NCBI GenBank assembly: GCA_937625935.1
Contig: OW569348.1
Span: 310,001 to 374,000, forward strand
Direction: 5' to 3'
From: Tetramitus jugosus
Taxonomy: Eukaryota; Protista; Heterolobosea
Length of the DNA stretch: 64,000 nucleotides
Under the pieces are notes generated by a model. It was not told the DNA's origin, did not search any database, and worked only from the letters and a program-made list of their open reading frames with translations. A program made the position numbers and the translations under genes. Below, in pieces: positions 209 through 62,871 of this stretch (its first letter is position 1; the number at the start of each line of letters is the position of its first letter).

Positions 209-1291
209 TTATTTCTGTGTAATCAAAACGTCTGACATGACCAGATTGTGATCTGTGCACTCGTTGGAGTCAACAATCGATGCTTCTTTGACTTCAAGTA
301 GGGTACTGTCGGGCTTATGCCATTGCAGGATATAGTCAATTCGTGTGTTGAAACGGCAGGTCGATAGGTCAAATGCAACCTTAATACCATTGACTGCATT
401 ATTTACATGTGGTGGATATTGATTCTTTTTTTGCATGATGCTCTGTAGAATATCAGTGAACTCCATTTGCCTCAAAGTGTTCATGAGACCGAACTGAGGC
501 GATTCCCATGCGCCCTTGGATCTCACACGGGCCACTTCATACAATTCTTCGTCTGAATAATCTCCTCTTGTCAGTGCATTGAAATCTCCCAAGACAAATA
601 TTTGTTCAATCCCCGAATATGTCATATCTCGCATGTGCAAGCGACGATAACGATCTTTCTGTTCATCAATCACAGTACCAACGATACCTTGCGCACTATG
701 GTTTCCACCACGCGCCCAAAAAGACAATACATCTGCAAATTCCTTCCATTGATTCAATCGATTCTCTTCCTTGATATGATCGAGGTGCGTGCTACAAAAC
801 AGTGCAGTCGGAAGTTGAGTCAACTTGATGCACAATATTGCTCGATGACCAACTGCAATTCTCGATACACAGTTGATCGCATCAGAGATTGGATATCTAG
901 ACAACACAGCATTTCCATACTCCTCATAATCCGCATGTCCAAACACAAAATACTTGAATCCACACGCTTGTGCCAACTGTTCCAGACTACTCGCTTCTCT
1001 GCCATCATCATCATCCTCATCACTGTCATCCTTGTTCTCAAAGGAGTTATCGACCCAGACTTCATTCAATGAGAGAATATCAATCTGCAGAGGATCAATC
1101 ATTGCAATCAGACGTTGAAGGTTTGGTTTCATTCGGGAATCGACCCAGTTATGTACATTTAAAGTGGCAATTCTCAGCGTACTTGGTAAGCAAGGAGTTG
1201 GAAAATTGTCTTGTGAGAGACGTGCTTTTTTTGCAGCTCTTTTGGACGTGAATGAGTTGATCGTATGTATGTTGGGGCGAATGATACGCAT
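209..1291 (-). CDS. Endonuclease/exonuclease/phosphatase (EEP) family protein
   Basis: Motifs ATLNVH, LSLNEV, GNAVLSRYP, THLDH, LGDFN, RIDY and TDH. First ATG at 1291; the ORF track starts at an upstream non-ATG codon. Confidence 0.88.
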   Translation of the reverse strand: MRIIRPNIHTINSFTSKRAAKKARLSQDNFPTPCLPSTLRIATLNVHNWVDSRMKPNLQRLIAMIDPLQIDILSLNEVWVDNSFENKDDSDEDDDDGREASSLEQLAQACGFKYFVFGHADYEEYGNAVLSRYPISDAINCVSRIAVGHRAILCIKLTQLPTALFCSTHLDHIKEENRLNQWKEFADVLSFWARGGNHSAQGIVGTVIDEQKDRYRRLHMRDMTYSGIEQIFVLGDFNALTRGDYSDEELYEVARVRSKGAWESPQFGLMNTLRQMEFTDILQSIMQKKNQYPPHVNNAVNGIKVAFDLSTCRFNTRIDYILQWHKPDSTLLEVKEASIVDSNECTDHNLVMSDVLITQK

Positions 1292-1742
1292 CTCGTTTGT
1301 TCTCCTTGTTTGTTTTGTGTTGTGAACAAAAAAGTAGGAACAATTTTTTTTCGAGAACTTTATAAGTTGCGAGAGAGCCCTATTTGCTTGATTCAAACAA
1401 GGAGATGTAGCATTTTTGTTTTTTAATACAACTCAGTTGCTCTTTATTGGTTCGTCAGCTTTCTTAGTGTTTCAATGCATGTTCTTCCGGGGACGCTCGA
1501 AGAGCGTTACCACTATTTACAGTCTTTCGATTGCTGGTAGAGTGTGTGCATCGTACGGATACAACGACTCTTCACCCAGCTCACAAAACTGCGTGCTTTG
1601 CGATGGACTGGTTCCTGCTACATCCCATATTTAACCAACGAGTCCATTACTTAATCAAGAGCCTCGCTTTCGATGCCCACATCCCACAGAGGTACTCCTT
1701 GCTCGTCGTCCTGCGTGTCGGCCAGAGATACCCGTTCCTGAA

Positions 1743-2080
1743 ATTCACCTTGTCGAATCACAAGTTGACAGTTTTCAGCCAGGAGACCCTACTGGTCAGT
1801 AGCCTTGTGTACAGTTTCGCTAGGCAGCTAAGCAGGCTAATTGGCCTATAATTGTCCAGGTTATTCCAGTCGCCCTTCTTGTACGCTGGTATGATGATGC
1901 TGCGCTTCCATTGGAAGTGATAATACGGAAGAACTGAGAAAGTATCACGGATCGGTTTTGAGTGATGCCATTCGTTCCACTGTGCGAGGTGTATCCTACT
2001 CTCTTTGACTTTTTTGTCTTTGAGGAGACAAAGAACATACGGGGACTGATTTGTTCAGATGTCCTTGCTTTCCACAACCA
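1743..2080 (-). mobile_element. Degenerate non-LTR retrotransposon (LINE) reverse transcriptase remnant
   Basis: Minus 1913-1785 translates QWKRSIIIPAYKKGDWNNLDNYRPISLLSCLAKLYTRLLTSRV, a hallmark LINE RT N-terminal block. A frameshifted upstream piece reads SGTNGIT...ILSQFF (PGPDG-like). Downstream FDKVN (KAFD-like) follows a stop. Confidence 0.85.
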
Positions 2081-3117
2081 CTTGCTGAATGTTTGTTGCT
2101 AGTTTTTCGTCTCTCTTCATGTATCAACGAGTCCACTTCTTTTAGGGCCATCAACGTTGGTGTCCTTGTTGAACAACTTCTGCTTTCTCATATCTTTCTG
2201 GGAGGTGGTTCCCATTTCGGTTCAATTCCGGTCCCAGAGTAATCGATTAGTCATCACAAACTTTAAGAATCCTGTATTCAGAAAGTTTAACTCGTGAAGC
2301 TTCTGAATTCCTCGAGCCCTCCAAGAAGAGTTCCAAGTAGCTCCTATCAAAGGGATAGGTCATCTTTCAAATGTCGTGACTGGTGTGTTGGATAATATCA
2401 TGTCATTGGTAAAATTGGCTCTTATATGATCCATGGAAGTGATACTGAGTATTGAATTGAAGTATGTTGAATATATCTTGTCAGAGAGCTCTGTGTTGTT
2501 TGATGGAGATACAGTGTCGCCTAGTAGAGTTAAATTTGTGAAACTGTACGCAGCTTCGTTGTCAAAAGGAGTAGTTCCCCTCTAGGAGCAAAGATGCGGA
2601 TGTCCGAAGCCAGCTGGGGAATGTTGAACGGTTCGCAAGTATACCAATATCTCGCACATGGTAAAAGTTGAGGCCAAGGGAAGAGTTCGCACTTAAAGAA
2701 CAAACCTCTCACCATATTGTCCGTCCTATTGAAGGTATGCAGTACTCAGGCAACTAGAAACATTCTTCTTCCAGAAAACCCACGTCAGCAACAAGTCACC
2801 AAACCAAGGATCTCATTTGGCGGCCAACAGTTCCTTCCAAACAGAGTGTGAAAATAGAGCAATTATTTTGTATCTGTCAATTCGCGCCAAAATAAATTTT
2901 TACCGCCAAGATGTATTCAACAAATTCAATCCCGGCGGAAGATAACAAATTATTAATATGTACTTTCAACATCCAAATGAATACTGTGCGTCCAGATCAT
3001 TCGGAATCTCGGGGAGCGGTATGTGTTACCCGAAATAATGTGTTTGCTACCATAAAATGGTAAGGAATTCCCCAACACAAACACAACAACCACCTACACA
3101 TATACCAATAAGAATCA

Positions 3118-13295: not shown

Positions 13296-13520
13296 GTTGT
13301 TATATTATTGTACAATGTTGTTTTGTGAAATGTATTGTGATGTTGTTGTGGAGGTTTCTGAAAGGGAGCGAATGTGTTGTTGATGGTTCTTTCTTACTGT
13401 TTCTCTCTTTTTGCCTGTTGGCTGTTGTCATCCGTCATCTATCCTCAAGCGGAAGTGGCAATTTCGGAGCGGAATAACACTGAACGAAACAAAAAATCAA
13501 ATTCAGAAAACCAAACCATA

Positions 13521-14141
13521 ATGAGCGCTGAAACATCCACAACAACATCTTTGACCTCTGTTTGCATTTACTGTGCCAGCTCCAACAAGATTGACCAAAA
13601 ATTCTTTGATGCTGCCATCGAGCTTGGCCGATCACTCGCAAAGAACAACATTTCCATTCGCTACGGCGGAGGAAATACCGGATTGATGGGCACTGTTGCA
13701 AAGTCTGTGTTGGACAATGGAGGCAAAGTGATTGGTGTGATCCCAAGATTCATGTGGGACAACAAGTGGGGTCATGAGCACTTGACCGAAATGATCATCA
13801 CAGAGACAATGCACGAGAGAAAGGTGGCCATGCTAAAGGACGTGGATGCTGTGATTGCATTGCCTGGTGGCGTAGGAACATTGGAAGAACTTTTGGAGAT
13901 TATATGCTGGAAAAAGTTGGGATTGTTTTTGAAGCCAATTATCATTGTGAACACTGATGGTTATTATCAATCATTGGTCGACATGTTGCAGAAGGCTGTG
14001 GATGAGAATTTTATGAACGGTGCACATTTGGAGATGTGGACCGTGGTGGATGATGTGAATGATGATCGTGTTGTTCAAGCCATTCATGACGCACCACAAT
14101 GGTTGGCCAGTAATGTCGGTAGAGTCAGTGAATTGATGTAA
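13521..14141 (+). CDS. LOG: LOG (lonely guy) family nucleotide phosphoribohydrolase
   Basis: VCIYCASS, YGGGNTGLMG, MHERK and LPGGVGTLEE motifs; ATG at 13521. Confidence 0.92.
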   Translation: MSAETSTTTSLTSVCIYCASSNKIDQKFFDAAIELGRSLAKNNISIRYGGGNTGLMGTVAKSVLDNGGKVIGVIPRFMWDNKWGHEHLTEMIITETMHERKVAMLKDVDAVIALPGGVGTLEELLEIICWKKLGLFLKPIIIVNTDGYYQSLVDMLQKAVDENFMNGAHLEMWTVVDDVNDDRVVQAIHDAPQWLASNVGRVSELM

Positions 14142-14210
14142 ATCGATATCACAAATAAACAAACATCGGCTTCATTTTCTCTCTTGTAATTACATTTAAT
14201 TGGTTGTTGC

Positions 14211-15590
14211 TTACGAAGCAGAGACAGCGGAAGTCAACTCGATCAATGGATAAATACCGAGCAATGCAATGACGAGAACGAGGCCACCAATCAATACAAT
14301 TGTCAATGGGTTCAAAACATTCAACAAAGTCTGCAATTGTTGCATGTACTCCTTGAGAACCATTTGAGACACATAACGAAGACCATCCTGAACAATTGAG
14401 TGCTTACCGCTCATGAAGCAAGCCTGTAGATATGCCACCTCGTACGGTGAAAATACATGCTTCTGCTTCAATAGATAACTGAGAACTTCATCTGCAGTTG
14501 CACCATACTTGGCCAAAGCAGCCATAGACTCAATCATATGCTGGAAAATGACATTACCGCTCAAATTTGTACACACAAGCAGTAACTTTGAGGTAATCTG
14601 CTCCTTGTCCAACAGAGACAATGTATAGAGAAGAGTTGCCTTGTCTTGCAAGAATTTCAAATGTCCAAGTGGCGTATGTAACTTCATATACTCGAGCTTT
14701 AAAAACGTTCTGAAAGGCAAGTATTGCTTGCTACTCGATATGACACTCGGTATCAAATATATCAAAGCCAACCAGTGGTACTGAACATTCTGAACCATGT
14801 AGTTTGCAACTTGCAAGAATTTAGGTACAGTGAGACCCATACTCTCAAAAATAGAGATGTTCTGTGGCAGAATCTTAATCAATAGCAGTGTGATACCTAG
14901 AATACCTAACACACCCATAATTGTGGGATAAATCAGTGCACCTGACACTGCCTTTTGAATTTTGATCTCTCGAGCAAACCTCTGTGCACAATACAGCAGA
15001 ATAGTATCGAAATTGTTCAACGATTTACCGAGAACAAGCGAACTGTAGTACCAAGCCGGTAGATATTGCTGCACACGAGACAATGTCGTAATAAATGTCT
15101 TGTAATCTGTGCCTCCGAGAGCACTCTTTGGAATTTTGACTTGAGCCAAAAAGGGCAATAGATCAGAATCCTTGGGTGCACTTCTCAACATGATACTAAA
15201 GATACTCAAACTGTTTAGAGACGGTGGAATAGAGTTGACCAGAAACAGAATGTTGTTGAAGGCTTGAAGAGAAGCTGTTGTGAGAGGACCACTCCCTTGA
15301 AAGCTCCGTATCACCTTGTTCAACAGACTCGGATGAGATGTTGGATCAATCTTTCGAGTGCTCCTTGATGTGCCCCCCTTCTTGAGATTCTTATTCTTTG
15401 ATTGTATTGATGTGGATTTCGCGCCACTAGCCGAAGCCGTAAATGATGTGTGAATTTGTCCGACTTTATCAAAACACCGATCCAAATCGTTTTGACCGGA
15501 CTGATCAGGCTGGATGTGCCGCATCAGATTCTCCAGTCTCCACCGCACTCGTTGTGCTCCCAAACTCTCATCAACAGTCTCCTCGCTCAT
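14211..15590 (-). CDS. gspF: Type II secretion system protein F (GspF/PilC) homologue, eukaryotic T2SS-derived system
   Basis: Two T2SSF-like halves and three TM segments: IQKAVSGALIYPTIMGVLGILGITLLLIKILPQNISIFESMGLTVP; KLHTPLG...LYTLSLL; SGNVIF...KYG; VFSPY...MSG; LLNVLNPLTIVLIGGLVLVIALLGIYPLIEL. First ATG at 15590. Confidence 0.85.
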   Translation of the reverse strand: MSEETVDESLGAQRVRWRLENLMRHIQPDQSGQNDLDRCFDKVGQIHTSFTASASGAKSTSIQSKNKNLKKGGTSRSTRKIDPTSHPSLLNKVIRSFQGSGPLTTASLQAFNNILFLVNSIPPSLNSLSIFSIMLRSAPKDSDLLPFLAQVKIPKSALGGTDYKTFITTLSRVQQYLPAWYYSSLVLGKSLNNFDTILLYCAQRFAREIKIQKAVSGALIYPTIMGVLGILGITLLLIKILPQNISIFESMGLTVPKFLQVANYMVQNVQYHWLALIYLIPSVISSSKQYLPFRTFLKLEYMKLHTPLGHLKFLQDKATLLYTLSLLDKEQITSKLLLVCTNLSGNVIFQHMIESMAALAKYGATADEVLSYLLKQKHVFSPYEVAYLQACFMSGKHSIVQDGLRYVSQMVLKEYMQQLQTLLNVLNPLTIVLIGGLVLVIALLGIYPLIELTSAVSAS

Positions 15591-15794
15591 CGGTAGTGGT
15601 TCTCGTAAAGTGACCGCCAAAATTTTGTTTGCTTCTTCACTTTTTTCCGTGTTTCTTCCCGATTTCTCCTCTCAATCTGCTCCAAAAATAAACGAAACAC
15701 CTGTTCAAACAAGAAAATCAAAGTCAATCGTGAAACAAACACCAACCAAGCAAAAAGCAAGTGCGCAATCATCAATCGACATTGACAAATCATT

Positions 15795-16662
15795 ATGGCT
15801 CAAACTGCTCAACAATTTTGGGATGATCTCCCTCAGATCACAAAATACCTCTGTGTTTTCATACTTGGTCTCACAATGATTGCACAATTTGGTCTCGTCA
15901 GTGGATACTCGCTGATATTGGACTTTGATTTAATCTTCAACTTGAAACAGTTGCAATTGTGGAGATTGATCACTGGTGTTTTCTTCTATGGAGGATTCAG
16001 TTTTTCATTTTTGATGAACTTTTTGGTGTTGTACGTGTGTTGTGTTGCTTATTACGGTTTATTGGATGATTTACGATCGATGGAGAAACTCATTTTTTAC
16101 TAACTATACATTTGTCACATGTGTGTGTGTTTTTTTGATTGATAGCTTACAATATAGCTCAAAGCTCGAAAAGGATACGTTTGGTGGCAGAAGTGCCGAC
16201 TATGTGTTTATGCTCTTGTTTGGATCATTTTTCATGCTGATTGCCGCCTATTTCCTCTCCATGCCTATTGTGAGTTACACCTTGTTAATGTACATTATCT
16301 ATGTGTGGTGTAATTTGAACACGAATGCTCATTTGAGCTTGTTCATGATACCGTTCCAGATTCCAGCTCGATACTTCCCATGGGCATTCATGATGTTTCA
16401 TGTTTTGCTCGGTGGTAGCATCGTGAGTGATTTGATTGGTATTGTGATTGGTCATGCATACTACTTTGTCATGTTTTACTATCCAAGAGAGTATCACAAG
16501 ACATTGATCAGCACTCCTGGCTTCTTATTGAACTGGTTCCCACCACAGAGAATGTCTGTTCATGGATTGAATCAATCGAGCTCACAACCTGCACCTCAGA
16601 GAGCACAACAAACCATGGGACCTCATCGATGGGGTGATGGAAGAAGACTGGGAGCAGAGTAG
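15795..16662 (+). CDS. DERL: Derlin (Der1 family ERAD protein), 2 exons: 15795-16030, 16146-16662
   Basis: LPQITK, QLWRLIT, YSSKLE, ADYVFML, YVW, YFPW and GHAYYF motifs. Intron GTACGT...TACTAAC...GATAG restores the frame. Confidence 0.93.
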
Positions 16663-16760: not shown

Positions 16761-19700
16761 TCAAAATAGCAAACGACACACTCGCTCTACCAACACAACA
16801 CCGACAATATCAGCAATCACCAACAGTGACACGAGGTGTTGAACACCGTATTGTGACAGATTCACTAAGCCCATGTAATTCTGCAACTCCATTGTTGCTT
16901 CCCATCCAAACAAGCATCCTCCAAGTGCGACCGCACAGCCACAGAAGCTGAACAAAAGAGGTTTGTTCACCCAAAAGTTCTCCATGAATGGTTCACCTCG
17001 ATAATTGTTGGCAAATGTAATAATGGTCTGGAAGGAACTCACAAGAAATACGATCGTGTTCATGAGACTGCCCTTCACATGTTCGTCACTTTCTTCCTCA
17101 ATATGGAATCTCGATTGAAGCTTGAGTGCATCGAGTGGAGCAACACTTCTTGAAATACAGACGCAGCAAATGAGAACTGCTAAATGAACCATAAACTGAG
17201 CCATCACAGAACCCAAGACTCTACCATTCCAGACACTCCTCTCAGGTCTTTGTGGTGACAACTTGGCGCTCGGCTTGGATCGAGAAATAAACAAGAAGAA
17301 CATGGCAACACAGATACCAGTACTCATCATTTGAGCATCAGTGTACTTGACACCCATCAGATACAGCACTGATAGAGAGTAGGCTGTCAAGAGACAGTTG
17401 ATAGCCAGAATCTTGTACATCTGATAGGTTGTGACCAGTGTGCATCGACCCTGTCTCAAAATTTCTCTCGTTGAACTAATGTTGCCCAGTCTTGATGTGA
17501 ATGGAGCAGCAATGGAGGCATCACCCAATCGAACAGTTCTCACATTGGACTCATCAACCTCATTGTTTGCTTGCTGCATTTGCTTTCTGGAATGCTCAAG
17601 CATCTCTTTAAATGTCTTTGGTTGCGTTTGTGGTGCAGCAGGCGCGACTGGTTGAGCTGGTTGTTCTCCAGTCTTGGCTGCATCGGATGGATCAGAGGAA
17701 ATGAGAGCAACACCAATATGACTCATCTTTAGAGCACCCACATCGTTAGTACCATCGCCACACATCAATGTAATATCTCCAGACTCCTTCATAGCTCTCA
17801 AAATGCTCTCTTTCTGATTTGGAGCCACTCGAGCATAGATGACAATCTTTTGACACAATTGACTCAGTGCTACTTTGAAATCGAGTTCGACAACAGGCAG
17901 CAAATCACCAGAGATACACAAGTCACCTTCAGGATAGAGTACATCTCCATTCTGAATAAATGGTTGAGTTTTGTGAGTAATGTGGTTGTGCCACTGCAAT
18001 TCACCAATCTCATTTTCAACTCGCTGCAACACCCATTGAACTGCGCTCATATCAGATATGCCACATTGCTTGGCTACATGGCAAGCAGTCAAAACGTTAT
18101 CACCCGTAATCATGACACATCTCATGGCAGCTCCGCGCAGTTCCAGAATAGTTTCCTTGGTAAGCTTCTTGAGCTCGCTTCCAAAGAGAGCAAAACCAAC
18201 AAAGTGCAAATCTGCTTCTACTTGATCTCTGTCCCACCCTTCAGCATCAGCAGTAGTTTTCTTGTACCCAAGCGCTAGAACTCTTAGACCAGAATTTGCA
18301 AGATCAAATACCATTTGGTCATACTTCTCAATGCTAGATAGGTTTGTAAATCGAGCCTTCAAGGTTTCTGGTGCACCCTTACATAAAATAAATGCCTCAT
18401 TGCCCTTGGTGACCAAAACTGACATTCTTCTCAGAGCAGACTCAAAGTCCCATCTCTTGACAAGCTTTAACTTGCTACCGAGCAAATTTTTAGAGTCTAA
18501 CCAGGATCTTGCTGCCCGTTCCATACCATCACCTACCCATTCTCCACCAACTTCGACCAATGTATTACAGTGCTCTAATACTTCATGTGCATGCTTGAAC
18601 TCTTTGGTATCCTCGTCTAGATGCTTCAATCCAGTCATCTTCATGTCAGAGTCTGTTAATGTTCCAGTCTTATCAAAACAGCATGTGTGAACATGACCTG
18701 CGACAGCTATAAGAGTTGGTTCAGTACAGAAGATGTGCTTCTGATGGAGAGCAACTAGCGAGCTGTTGATCGCAAGGGAGAGTTCCATAGGTAACTCAGG
18801 AGGAACAACAGACGTGATAATCATGATACAGTTCAAGACTACCTTGTAATTTGAAACGATTCCAGAATCCCACAGATGATAGAACACATAACTGGATGCA
18901 AGAAGAGCAAACTGAACCAAGAACAGAATAAAACCGTATGACTGCCAGTCGGTATGCGATGAAGTGGACGACTCCAAAATAGTTCGTACAAGCTTGCCCT
19001 GACTCGTTCCAAATCCAATTCTAATAACTTTGGCAATAGCTCCAGAAGCAGCAGGCTTACCGCTCTTCGTTACAGCAGATCTCGATTGCAAAACTTTTGT
19101 ACCGGATGAGATAATGTGTGTTTTGAGATCCTTCTCCGGTACATTAGCCTTCTTATCATACTTGGAATAGAATGAACTCTTCAACAATGGAGTACTCTCT
19201 CCTGTCAACAAGCTCTCATTCACAACGACTTCACCTGAAACGAGCACCATGTCGGCTGGCACCAATCCCTCTCCAATAATCACAACTTCTCCAGGTAGAA
19301 TATCGGAACGTGGAATCTTCTTGTTTCGATCCACACTGAAAATATGCTTCTCGTCCTCGGAGAGCGATGTCTCAGGGTTAGCCATCTGTCTAATCATTCT
19401 CAAATTCCTCAATCGAGACATTGTCAACGTCACTTCAAACGTAAAGAGAAGGAACAGTGTCATCAGAGAATACATGAAATAGTCGTCCATGGACCACAAC
19501 AGAACACATAATACTTGGAAAATGAAAAACGGAGCCAATGCTTGCTGAATAAATAAGTCCTTGAATGCTGGCACAGGAATCACATATTCATTTCTACCGT
19601 ACACTCTTCTCAGATCACTCACTTCCTTGTCTGTCATCCCCGTCTCCAAAAAGTATTTACCATTTGGTGTGGCGGATGGTGACTGATAGGGAAATTTGAT

Positions 19701-20242
19701 CTTTTCGACCTTATTTGTCGCATACTCAATCACATATTTCCTTTGCCTGAAATGGAATGATCCATAATTGTGACTCGCTGATTTCACAACAGGTTCCAAG
19801 AACAATTGTTGGGTAGAGTACTTGTTGGAATGTGCACTCACATGAGTCGCTTCCTTGATGTCACATTTTTGATAGTGCAAAAAAATGGTCATTTTCAAGC
19901 TCCAATAACCACTATGATTGTTCACAACAAAAAATGTGTGTCAATAATAATATTATTCATAGTTTGATGATCAAATAAAATGAGTGGAGCAAAGCAAGAG
20001 ATTGCAACACAATAAACATACCTGAGAAACAGAATCAGCTGACACAGTAAACTCAACACGAAACCAACAACATAAAAAACAGTTTCCTCCTGCGTGGAAA
20101 CAATTTGATGAACAAGATGATTGAATCCGAGTGGCAAAAGAACATGGAGGAAAATGAATGGGTATATGACTGGTTTGAAAAGAAAAGGTCGCTTCTTGAG
20201 TGGTGTAATCACCACGGAAGAGTTGACCGATTGTAGCTGCAT
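16761..20242 (-). CDS. SPF1: P5A-type ATPase (Spf1/ATP13A1), 2 exons; intron 19912-20021
   Basis: LTGES, PPELPMEL (P5A signature), DKTGTLT, KGAPE, TGDN and GDGTND. Splicing yields FLSGYWSL. Confidence 0.93.

Positions 20243-61270: not shown

Positions 61271-62871
<1,601 letters not shown>

Follow-up and report, generated by a model that had tools for sequence, protein, structure and literature searches.

A conserved PTS2-type nonapeptide at the head of GspF appears to mark six subunit families of the mitochondrial type II secretion system

The mitochondrial type II secretion system (miT2SS) belongs to a small group of proposed ancestral eukaryotic systems that still await an explanation of their function and biogenesis. 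Horvathova et al. (2021) presumed the N-terminal extensions of its subunits to be presequences and named the type 2 peroxisomal targeting signal (PTS2) once, as the ligand of Pex7 (PMC8134430). The same study placed three WD40 proteins that co-occur with the system, Gcp1–3, next to Pex7 as its paralogues. A 2023 review mentions neither PTS2 nor Pex7, and we found no link between PTS2 and Gsp proteins in the searchable text of the miT2SS literature, which leaves room for unremarked alignment shading in figures. Here we describe a GspF gene of the heterolobosean Tetramitus jugosus, encoded on the minus strand of a 64,000-nucleotide stretch of contig OW569348.1 (positions 310,001–374,000; hereafter the window). 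The nonapeptide RLENLMRHI, hereafter the tag, occupies residues 18–26 of the protein (15513–15539), exactly where a sequence-only reading of the window had located it, and belongs to a leader that lies in the stretch described as a eukaryote-specific extension (PMC8134430).

The tag has two well-described points of reference. In its stringent form, the PTS2 consensus is [RK]-[LVI]-x5-[HQ]-[LAF], has a hydrophobic fifth residue and is placed within about the first 40 residues (PMC7710942, PMC4585086), and the signal is bound by the groove of Pex7 as a two-turn helix (PMC4585086). In other taxa, orthologous PTS2 are reported with Ile, Val or Met as the ninth residue and with Met as the second (PMC7710942). 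Mitochondrial presequences lack a common primary-sequence consensus and are nearly free of acidic residues (PMC4585086). The PTS2 helix and the presequence are physically alike, and single substitutions interconvert them (PMC4585086).

The gene itself does not differ from those of other miT2SS; what is new is the reading of its extension as PTS2-like. The product is a clear orthologue of eukaryotic GspF (PMC8134430), with the same N-terminal extension and with 56–85% identity in the body to the proteins of Naegleria, Willaertia, Acrasis, Malawimonas and Andalucia. It is recognized by the Pfam T2SSF profile (3.3e-13) and by TIGR02120 GspF (5.4e-20; residues 169–456). Like bacterial GspF, PulF and PilC, it has T2SSF domains and membrane helices, but the profile aligns from residue 169 only (profile positions 118–401), and the first cytoplasmic domain is strongly diverged. 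The same genome has GspE, GspEL, GspG, a GspD candidate and Gcp2.

In the open reading frame (ORF; 14211..15620, minus), the first in-frame ATG is at 15590, and no ATG lies between the upstream stop and Met1. Positions 14000–15595 match a soil metatranscriptome contig colinearly and without gaps, so the gene is intronless and its mRNA extends at least 5 nucleotides 5′ of the ATG; since such contigs are assembled, 15595 is a lower bound and not a mapped 5′ end. Translation from Met1, which the sequence-only reading had assumed, is consistent with this contig and with conservation upstream of Met23; downstream initiation at Met23 is rejected on the grounds of the contig and of the conserved codons preceding that residue. 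Compared over 1596 positions, a related strain in the metatranscriptome run has 16 differences, all outside the nonapeptide. One of them, 15511 T>C (Q27R), affects the variable residue directly after it.

A word search returned 18 eukaryotic GspF proteins (Naegleria lovaniensis, N. fowleri, Willaertia, Acrasis, Malawimonas, Andalucia and metagenomic relatives). The relaxed pattern R-[LIVM]-x2-[LIV]-x2-[HQ]-[LIVMC] has exactly one match per whole protein in all 16 GspF that have their N-terminus; three GspF without a match are truncated models. The motif starts at residues 3–52 and stands in register within an otherwise unalignable extension. All 16 have L, I or V at position 5 (Leu22 here), and one residue after the nonapeptide a proline follows in 13 of the 16 rows, with a proline one position later in two more. 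The sequence-only reading had made its case depend on conservation of the nonapeptide among orthologues, and this conservation is what the alignment contains. It had also taken a Cys and a small-residue stretch as signs of a cleavable leader; these residues are present (Cys47 and TSFTASAS, residues 57–64), but neither is conserved in the orthologue alignment, and we reject that interpretation. Between the tag and the conserved body, at about residues 55–64, lies a weakly conserved patch, hydrophobic-hydrophobic-[ST]-A-A (SFTASA here, LVTAAA in Naegleria), where processing might take place.

The pattern alone would prove little. Its expected chance rate in 60-residue N-termini of this genome is 0.26–0.35%, and at about 0.3% some tens of proteins per proteome would carry it; requiring a proline two or three residues further lowers the rate to about 0.02%. 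In the first 60 residues of 158 ORFs (ATG start, at least 150 residues, taken from the window and twenty random 10-kb samples, 264 kb of genome), the relaxed pattern occurs in GspF only. A lone match is therefore weak evidence across a whole proteome, and a functionless coincidence would have to be considered on that basis. However, coincidence is refuted by conservation of the tag in register across the 16 GspF orthologues, and it is further opposed by the finding that this genome has four tagged Gsp proteins and that six families of four lineages share the tag. We give it negligible weight: on the alignment, the tag in GspF is real and conserved.

The tag is not restricted to GspF, a point that the sequence-only reading overlooked. 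A whole-genome search with a 14-column profile of the GspF tags returned the window copy alone, its first-stage filter being too strict for such a short model. In the same genome, GspE has RINVLLKHI then S-P (in exon 1), GspG has RLRILANHI then H-P, and GspEL has RANTLLNHL then S-P; we looked for the tag in the GspD candidate and found none. Supplementary Data 1 of PMC8134430 was surveyed by eye, without the rows for Gcp3–4 and Gcp10–12 and with partial coverage of those for Gcp2 and a minority of those for Gcp16. Among the species listed there, the tag is present on GspE in 8 of 8, on GspF in 9 of 9, on GspEL and GspEN2A in every species, on GspG in all but Reclinomonas (both hemimastigotes included), and on GspEN2B except in two models with a later start. 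The lineages concerned are heteroloboseans, jakobids, malawimonads and hemimastigotes. The surveyed rows show no tag on GspD, GspDL, GspDN1, GspDN2 or GspDN3, and none at the N-termini of Gcp5, 7, 8, 13, 14 and 15. A separate search with the GspG of this genome gave 11 relatives, 8 of which carry the tag once, upstream of the prepilin-like site and 80–240 residues away from it.

This distribution makes the tag a mark of six families (GspE, GspEL, GspEN2A, GspEN2B, GspF and GspG). In bacteria their counterparts are on the cytoplasmic side, the equivalent of the matrix side here; the families of the outer membrane and intermembrane space are spared. As far as sequence comparison reaches, it is a signature common to these families and not specific to GspF. 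In the surveyed rows, Naegleria Gcp6 alone among Gcp6 proteins has gained a tag, on a lineage-specific extension, and Reclinomonas Gcp16 bears one too. These two cases suggest a portable signal more than a part of a domain.

Several related sequence features were seen in passing. The GspG of this genome (979–2088 (+) of region L004) contains a second, weaker copy, RIKQIIRYV then L-P, in which Tyr replaces His/Gln; it lies about 75 residues past the first copy and upstream of the prepilin-like site. In the rows surveyed, GspDN2 combines C-terminal tripeptides resembling the type 1 peroxisomal targeting signal (PTS1) with an internal [RK]-L-x2-F-L-x-H-F-D-[RK]-P-P helix. Near the N-terminus of Gcp9, a conserved element, hydrophobic-x-x-hydrophobic-hydrophobic-F-P-[RK], is similar to the latter half of the tag. 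Within Gcp13 lies the block L-H-[RK]-hydrophobic-hydrophobic-x-x-hydrophobic-L-P-[KR]-P-N-K-G-L-W-E-P.

To place the tag relative to a working PTS2, we used thiolases as a yardstick. The FadI/HADHB-type thiolase of this genome (1042–2481 (-) of region L010, contig C4 near 526 kb) has an N-terminal RLHILQQHL then S-P. This family splits into members with short classical presequences, for example those of kinetoplastids, and members with a textbook PTS2; the latter class includes heteroloboseans and Andalucia and also taxa that lack a T2SS, for example Plasmodiophora and chlorarachniophytes. On comparative grounds, we infer that the heterolobosean thiolase signal is a PTS2, and with it the probable compartment of the enzyme. 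The Andalucia FadI-type thiolase is annotated as mitochondrial, yet has the PTS2 form. Within the window, a two-exon thiolase gene (61724–62625 (-); contig 371724–372625) shows no extension at its N-terminus in those frames that were read.

A position matrix trained only on 24 thiolase PTS2 signals was scored on N-termini and found the Gsp tags in the correct register. The GspE, GspG and GspEL of this genome scored 20.7, 23.6 and 23.9, and the GspF orthologues ranged from 2.3 to 31, with 14 of the 16 that have an N-terminus at 10 or above. For 157 background ORFs, the mean was -6.7 (standard deviation 4.8, maximum 11.8). The GspF of the window scored 6.2 at the nonapeptide, and 1 of the 157 background ORFs scored as high; in this highest-scoring background ORF, the stretch sits behind a signal peptide, and we rejected it as a chance match.

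The tag shares with the thiolase PTS2 the Arg at position 1, hydrophobic residues at positions 2, 5 and 9, and His or Gln at position 8. Further points of likeness are the location in roughly the first 40 residues, the tolerance of variable upstream sequence, a predicted helical structure and the frequent proline after the motif, which is common in thiolase PTS2 signals as well. In the window GspF, the nonapeptide ends at residue 26 of a protein whose Met1 is covered by the RNA contig, and the modelled helix that contains it coincides with a local confidence peak: the mean predicted local distance difference test (pLDDT) value is 71 for residues 11–20, against ten-residue means of 31–47 across residues 31–160 (AlphaFold2). 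Such a model agrees with the two-turn amphipathic helix of a PTS2. The stringent consensus is matched by 6 of 16 GspF orthologues, and many Gsp copies fall outside it because their ninth residue is frequently Ile, Val or Met and their second occasionally Met or Ala; the thiolase set likewise contains signals with Ile, Val or Met in the ninth place and with Met in the second. The PTS2-like core proposed by the sequence-only reading thus holds up as a conserved element that the matrix recognizes, and fails the stringent consensus at position 9 (Ile), as that reading had cautioned. The tag differs from a thiolase PTS2 in that its carriers are experimentally mitochondrial (PMC8134430), that they include a polytopic membrane protein and a prepilin-like membrane protein, and that a conserved Cys cleavage site is missing.

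Published localization of the tag-bearing proteins points to mitochondria. In N. gruberi, all five core Gsp proteins, including GspF, GspE and GspG1/2, were found in the mitochondrial and not in the peroxisomal proteome, and antibodies against NgGspG1 and NgGspEN2A co-stain with MitoTracker (PMC8134430). NgGspE-GFP and NgGspG1-GFP go to yeast mitochondria, and residues 1–160 of NgGspG1, tag included, bring mNeonGreen to the mitochondrion of T. brucei; expression of GspF failed, and import was shown for other tag-bearing leaders (PMC8134430). Because these data place the tag-bearing proteins in mitochondria, peroxisomal residence of GspF is not supported, nor is the proposal of the sequence-only reading that this GspF could be peroxisome-targeted.

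A milder form of that proposal is that the tag is a working PTS2 by which canonical Pex7 takes the tagged subunits wholly or partly to peroxisomes, through dual targeting or shuttling. It would draw on the sequence equivalence to thiolase PTS2, on the presence of PEX7 in Naegleria (PMC7549135), on the clustering of NgGspEL with peroxisomal markers in preparations where peroxisomes and mitochondria co-purify (PMC8134430), and on PTS1-like ends seen on GspDN2, Gcp1, Gcp8 and Gcp13 in the surveyed rows. Besides the N. gruberi localization, it conflicts with the mitochondrial destination of the fusions in T. brucei and yeast, both of which have a PTS2 pathway. As the sequence-only reading had cautioned, the PTS2 route serves soluble matrix proteins, whereas GspF is polytopic (three to four TMHMM spans in the listed models of Supplementary Data 1), and a secretin-based machine requires two membranes. 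We consider peroxisomal delivery by Pex7 unlikely.

The same localization data fit another idea, in which the tag is the core of an unusual mitochondrial presequence, read by the translocases of the outer and inner mitochondrial membranes (TOM/TIM) and removed by the matrix peptidase with no involvement of a Pex7-family protein, its likeness to PTS2 being physical. The tag would be an N-terminal basic amphipathic helix that brings reporters to mitochondria in heterologous hosts, and the leader of mature GspG is probably removed, all detected GspG peptides lying downstream of it (PMC8134430). Jakobid and malawimonad copies, among those listed, are predicted as presequences (PMC8134430). Precedents exist as well: one His substitution makes a thiolase PTS2 mitochondrial (PMC4585086), and a predicted RLx5HL protein localized to mitochondria (PMC7710942). 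This makes the plain presequence a serious rival.

Against it stands the position-specific conservation of the tag across families and supergroups: Arg1, the hydrophobic residues at 2, 5 and 9 and His/Gln at 8 persist across four deep lineages and in six families that are either unrelated or diverged long ago. The sequence upstream of the tag is often acidic in the listed Gsp proteins, and the tag may begin 20–50 residues, or more, from the N-terminus. TargetP and MitoFates predict no presequence on heterolobosean Gsp proteins (PMC8134430). The GspF leader described here, which starts with MSEETVDES and has 6 acidic residues and 4 Arg in residues 1–30, is likewise unlike a presequence in composition and in its position-by-position conservation of the motif; the remark of the sequence-only reading that its acidic start is atypical is supported. 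In a set of ten ordinary N. gruberi mitochondrial proteins, all with classical presequences that start at residue 1–2, no copy of the motif occurs. Finally, a plain presequence leaves the co-occurrence of three Pex7 paralogues unaccounted for. On balance we doubt this explanation, while giving it more weight than Pex7-mediated delivery to peroxisomes.

A role after import has also to be weighed. On the matrix side, the tag might be a docking peptide for a common partner, for example the GspE-family ring, or a recognition element for a peptidase such as Gcp16, a putative membrane metallopeptidase that has been proposed to substitute for the prepilin peptidase (PMC8134430). The restriction of the tag to matrix-side subunits in the surveyed rows would suit such a role, as would the lack in eukaryotes of GspL, GspM and GspC, which link the platform in bacteria (2023 review), and the presence of NgGcp1 in the mitochondrial proteome (PMC8134430). 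Docking sits poorly with the apparent removal of the GspG leader in the mature protein (PMC8134430), and prepilin processing with the 80–240 residues that separate tag and prepilin site. In addition, Reclinomonas Gcp16 itself bears a tag. A matrix-side function therefore seems improbable to us.

The strict conservation of Arg1, His/Gln8 and the hydrophobic face across families calls for a specific reader, and Gcp1–3 are the best candidates because they are the only ones that track the system. We therefore favor, with moderate confidence and from sequence comparison, the explanation that the tag is a shared PTS2-type recognition helix on mitochondria-bound proteins, read by a candidate Pex7-family propeller, most plausibly among Gcp1–3. 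The suggestion of the sequence-only reading that a Pex7-like factor binds this GspF survives in this form, separated from peroxisomal residence. On this view, RLENLMRHI is the GspF copy of a PTS2-type amphipathic helix of the form R-hydrophobic-x-x-hydrophobic-x-x-[H/Q]-hydrophobic, mostly with x-Pro after it, that heads the N-terminal extensions of all matrix-side miT2SS subunits and is absent from outer-membrane and intermembrane-space subunits. Presented on a flexible leader, it could be recognized by a Pex7-family beta-propeller, with Gcp1–3, which are restricted to eukaryotes with a miT2SS, as the leading candidates; recognition would take place at the mitochondrion while the tagged subunits are being delivered or assembled. 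We infer both the identity of the receptor and the site of recognition, which may be the cytosol or the matrix.

This genome encodes a candidate reader. A Gcp2 orthologue lies at 1267–2439 (+) of region L045 (contig C14 near 345 kb), identified by a unique match to the HTDP-x-LRLW signature; its nearest Atlas clusters are Peroxin-7 (0.96–0.97). Relative to the Naegleria sequences it has a long Ser/Asn-rich insertion and tail. For Gcp1, back-translated peptide patterns matched only unrelated genes in this genome. In the listed part of Supplementary Data 1, Percolomonas retains only GspD, GspDL, GspDN1–3 and four Gcps, having neither the six tagged families nor Gcp1, a joint absence that weakly fits a link between the two.

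Several observations weigh against a dedicated Gcp1–3 reader. Tagged N-termini enter the mitochondria of yeast and T. brucei, which have Pex7 and no Gcp1–3, so these proteins are unnecessary for import there. In sequence, the Gsp tags are indistinguishable from the thiolase PTS2 of the same organisms, and the PTS2 matrix matches the window copy rather weakly, with two GspF orthologues scoring lower or similarly. A PDB sequence search with the Gcp2 of this genome returned RBBP4/p55 and WDR77 first, and Pex7 was not among the best 60 matches. In the proteome, NgGcp1 clusters apart from NgGcp2, and several of these proteins have PTS1-like ends (PMC8134430). Finally, much of the cross-family evidence comes from the survey of the supplement by eye described above.

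A conserved helix on six matrix-side families would provide a concrete, mutable candidate ligand for the Pex7-like proteins. The tag bears on how subunits are delivered in heteroloboseans, where no presequence is predicted, on why Pex7 paralogues and PTS1-bearing proteins track the system, and on its link to peroxisomes. It can also be used to look for additional clients of such a pathway, Naegleria Gcp6 being one example. For proteome-wide PTS2 prediction, it is relevant that PTS2-shaped signals can occur on experimentally mitochondrial proteins. More tentatively, the tag and Gcp1–3 may form a second PTS2-type receptor–signal system, ancestral to eukaryotes, that delivers matrix-side subunits to mitochondria or couples mitochondria and peroxisomes; this is possible and would, if true, be a protein-targeting route of a kind not previously described.

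The features of the GspF gene are collected in Table 1.

Table 1. Features of the GspF gene, in positions of the window
Feature	Position	Strand	Basis and remarks
GspF coding sequence	14211..15590	minus	459 aa plus stop, intronless; ORF and translation, Pfam, TIGR02120, RNA contig
Shortest 5′ leader by RNA	15591..15595	minus	Metatranscriptome contig end at 15595
Predicted alpha-helix, residues 8–26	15513..15569	minus	AlphaFold2 on the GspF alignment; ends at the final motif residue
Extended tag R-W-R-L-E-N-L-M-R-H-I-Q-P, residues 16–28	15507..15545	minus	Basic residue before the nonapeptide, x-Pro after; alignment
PTS2-type nonapeptide RLENLMRHI, residues 18–26	15513..15539	minus	Orthologue alignment; best position of the thiolase-trained matrix
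Variable linker, residues 27–90, predicted disordered	15321..15512	minus	Orthologues unalignable; pLDDT <50 over residues 27–138
Conserved GspF body, residues 91–459, with T2SSF domains and membrane helices	14214..15320	minus	Near-invariant columns from about residue 103

GspF is flanked by two genes on the plus strand. Convergent with it lies a LOG/lysine-decarboxylase-like ORF (13374–14141 (+)); a single RNA contig spans the 3′ ends of both, and the transcripts may overlap tail to tail. On the other side, a gene for a Derlin-like membrane protein (15795–16662 (+)) is divergent from GspF and contains a 115-nucleotide GT..AG intron (16031–16145) that three metatranscriptome contigs confirm. 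Derlin-like transcripts begin near 15743, and about 150 bp separates the two divergent mRNAs. Further along, an ORF of 1054 aa (16761–19925 (-)) contains the P-type ATPase phosphorylation motif DKTGTLT.

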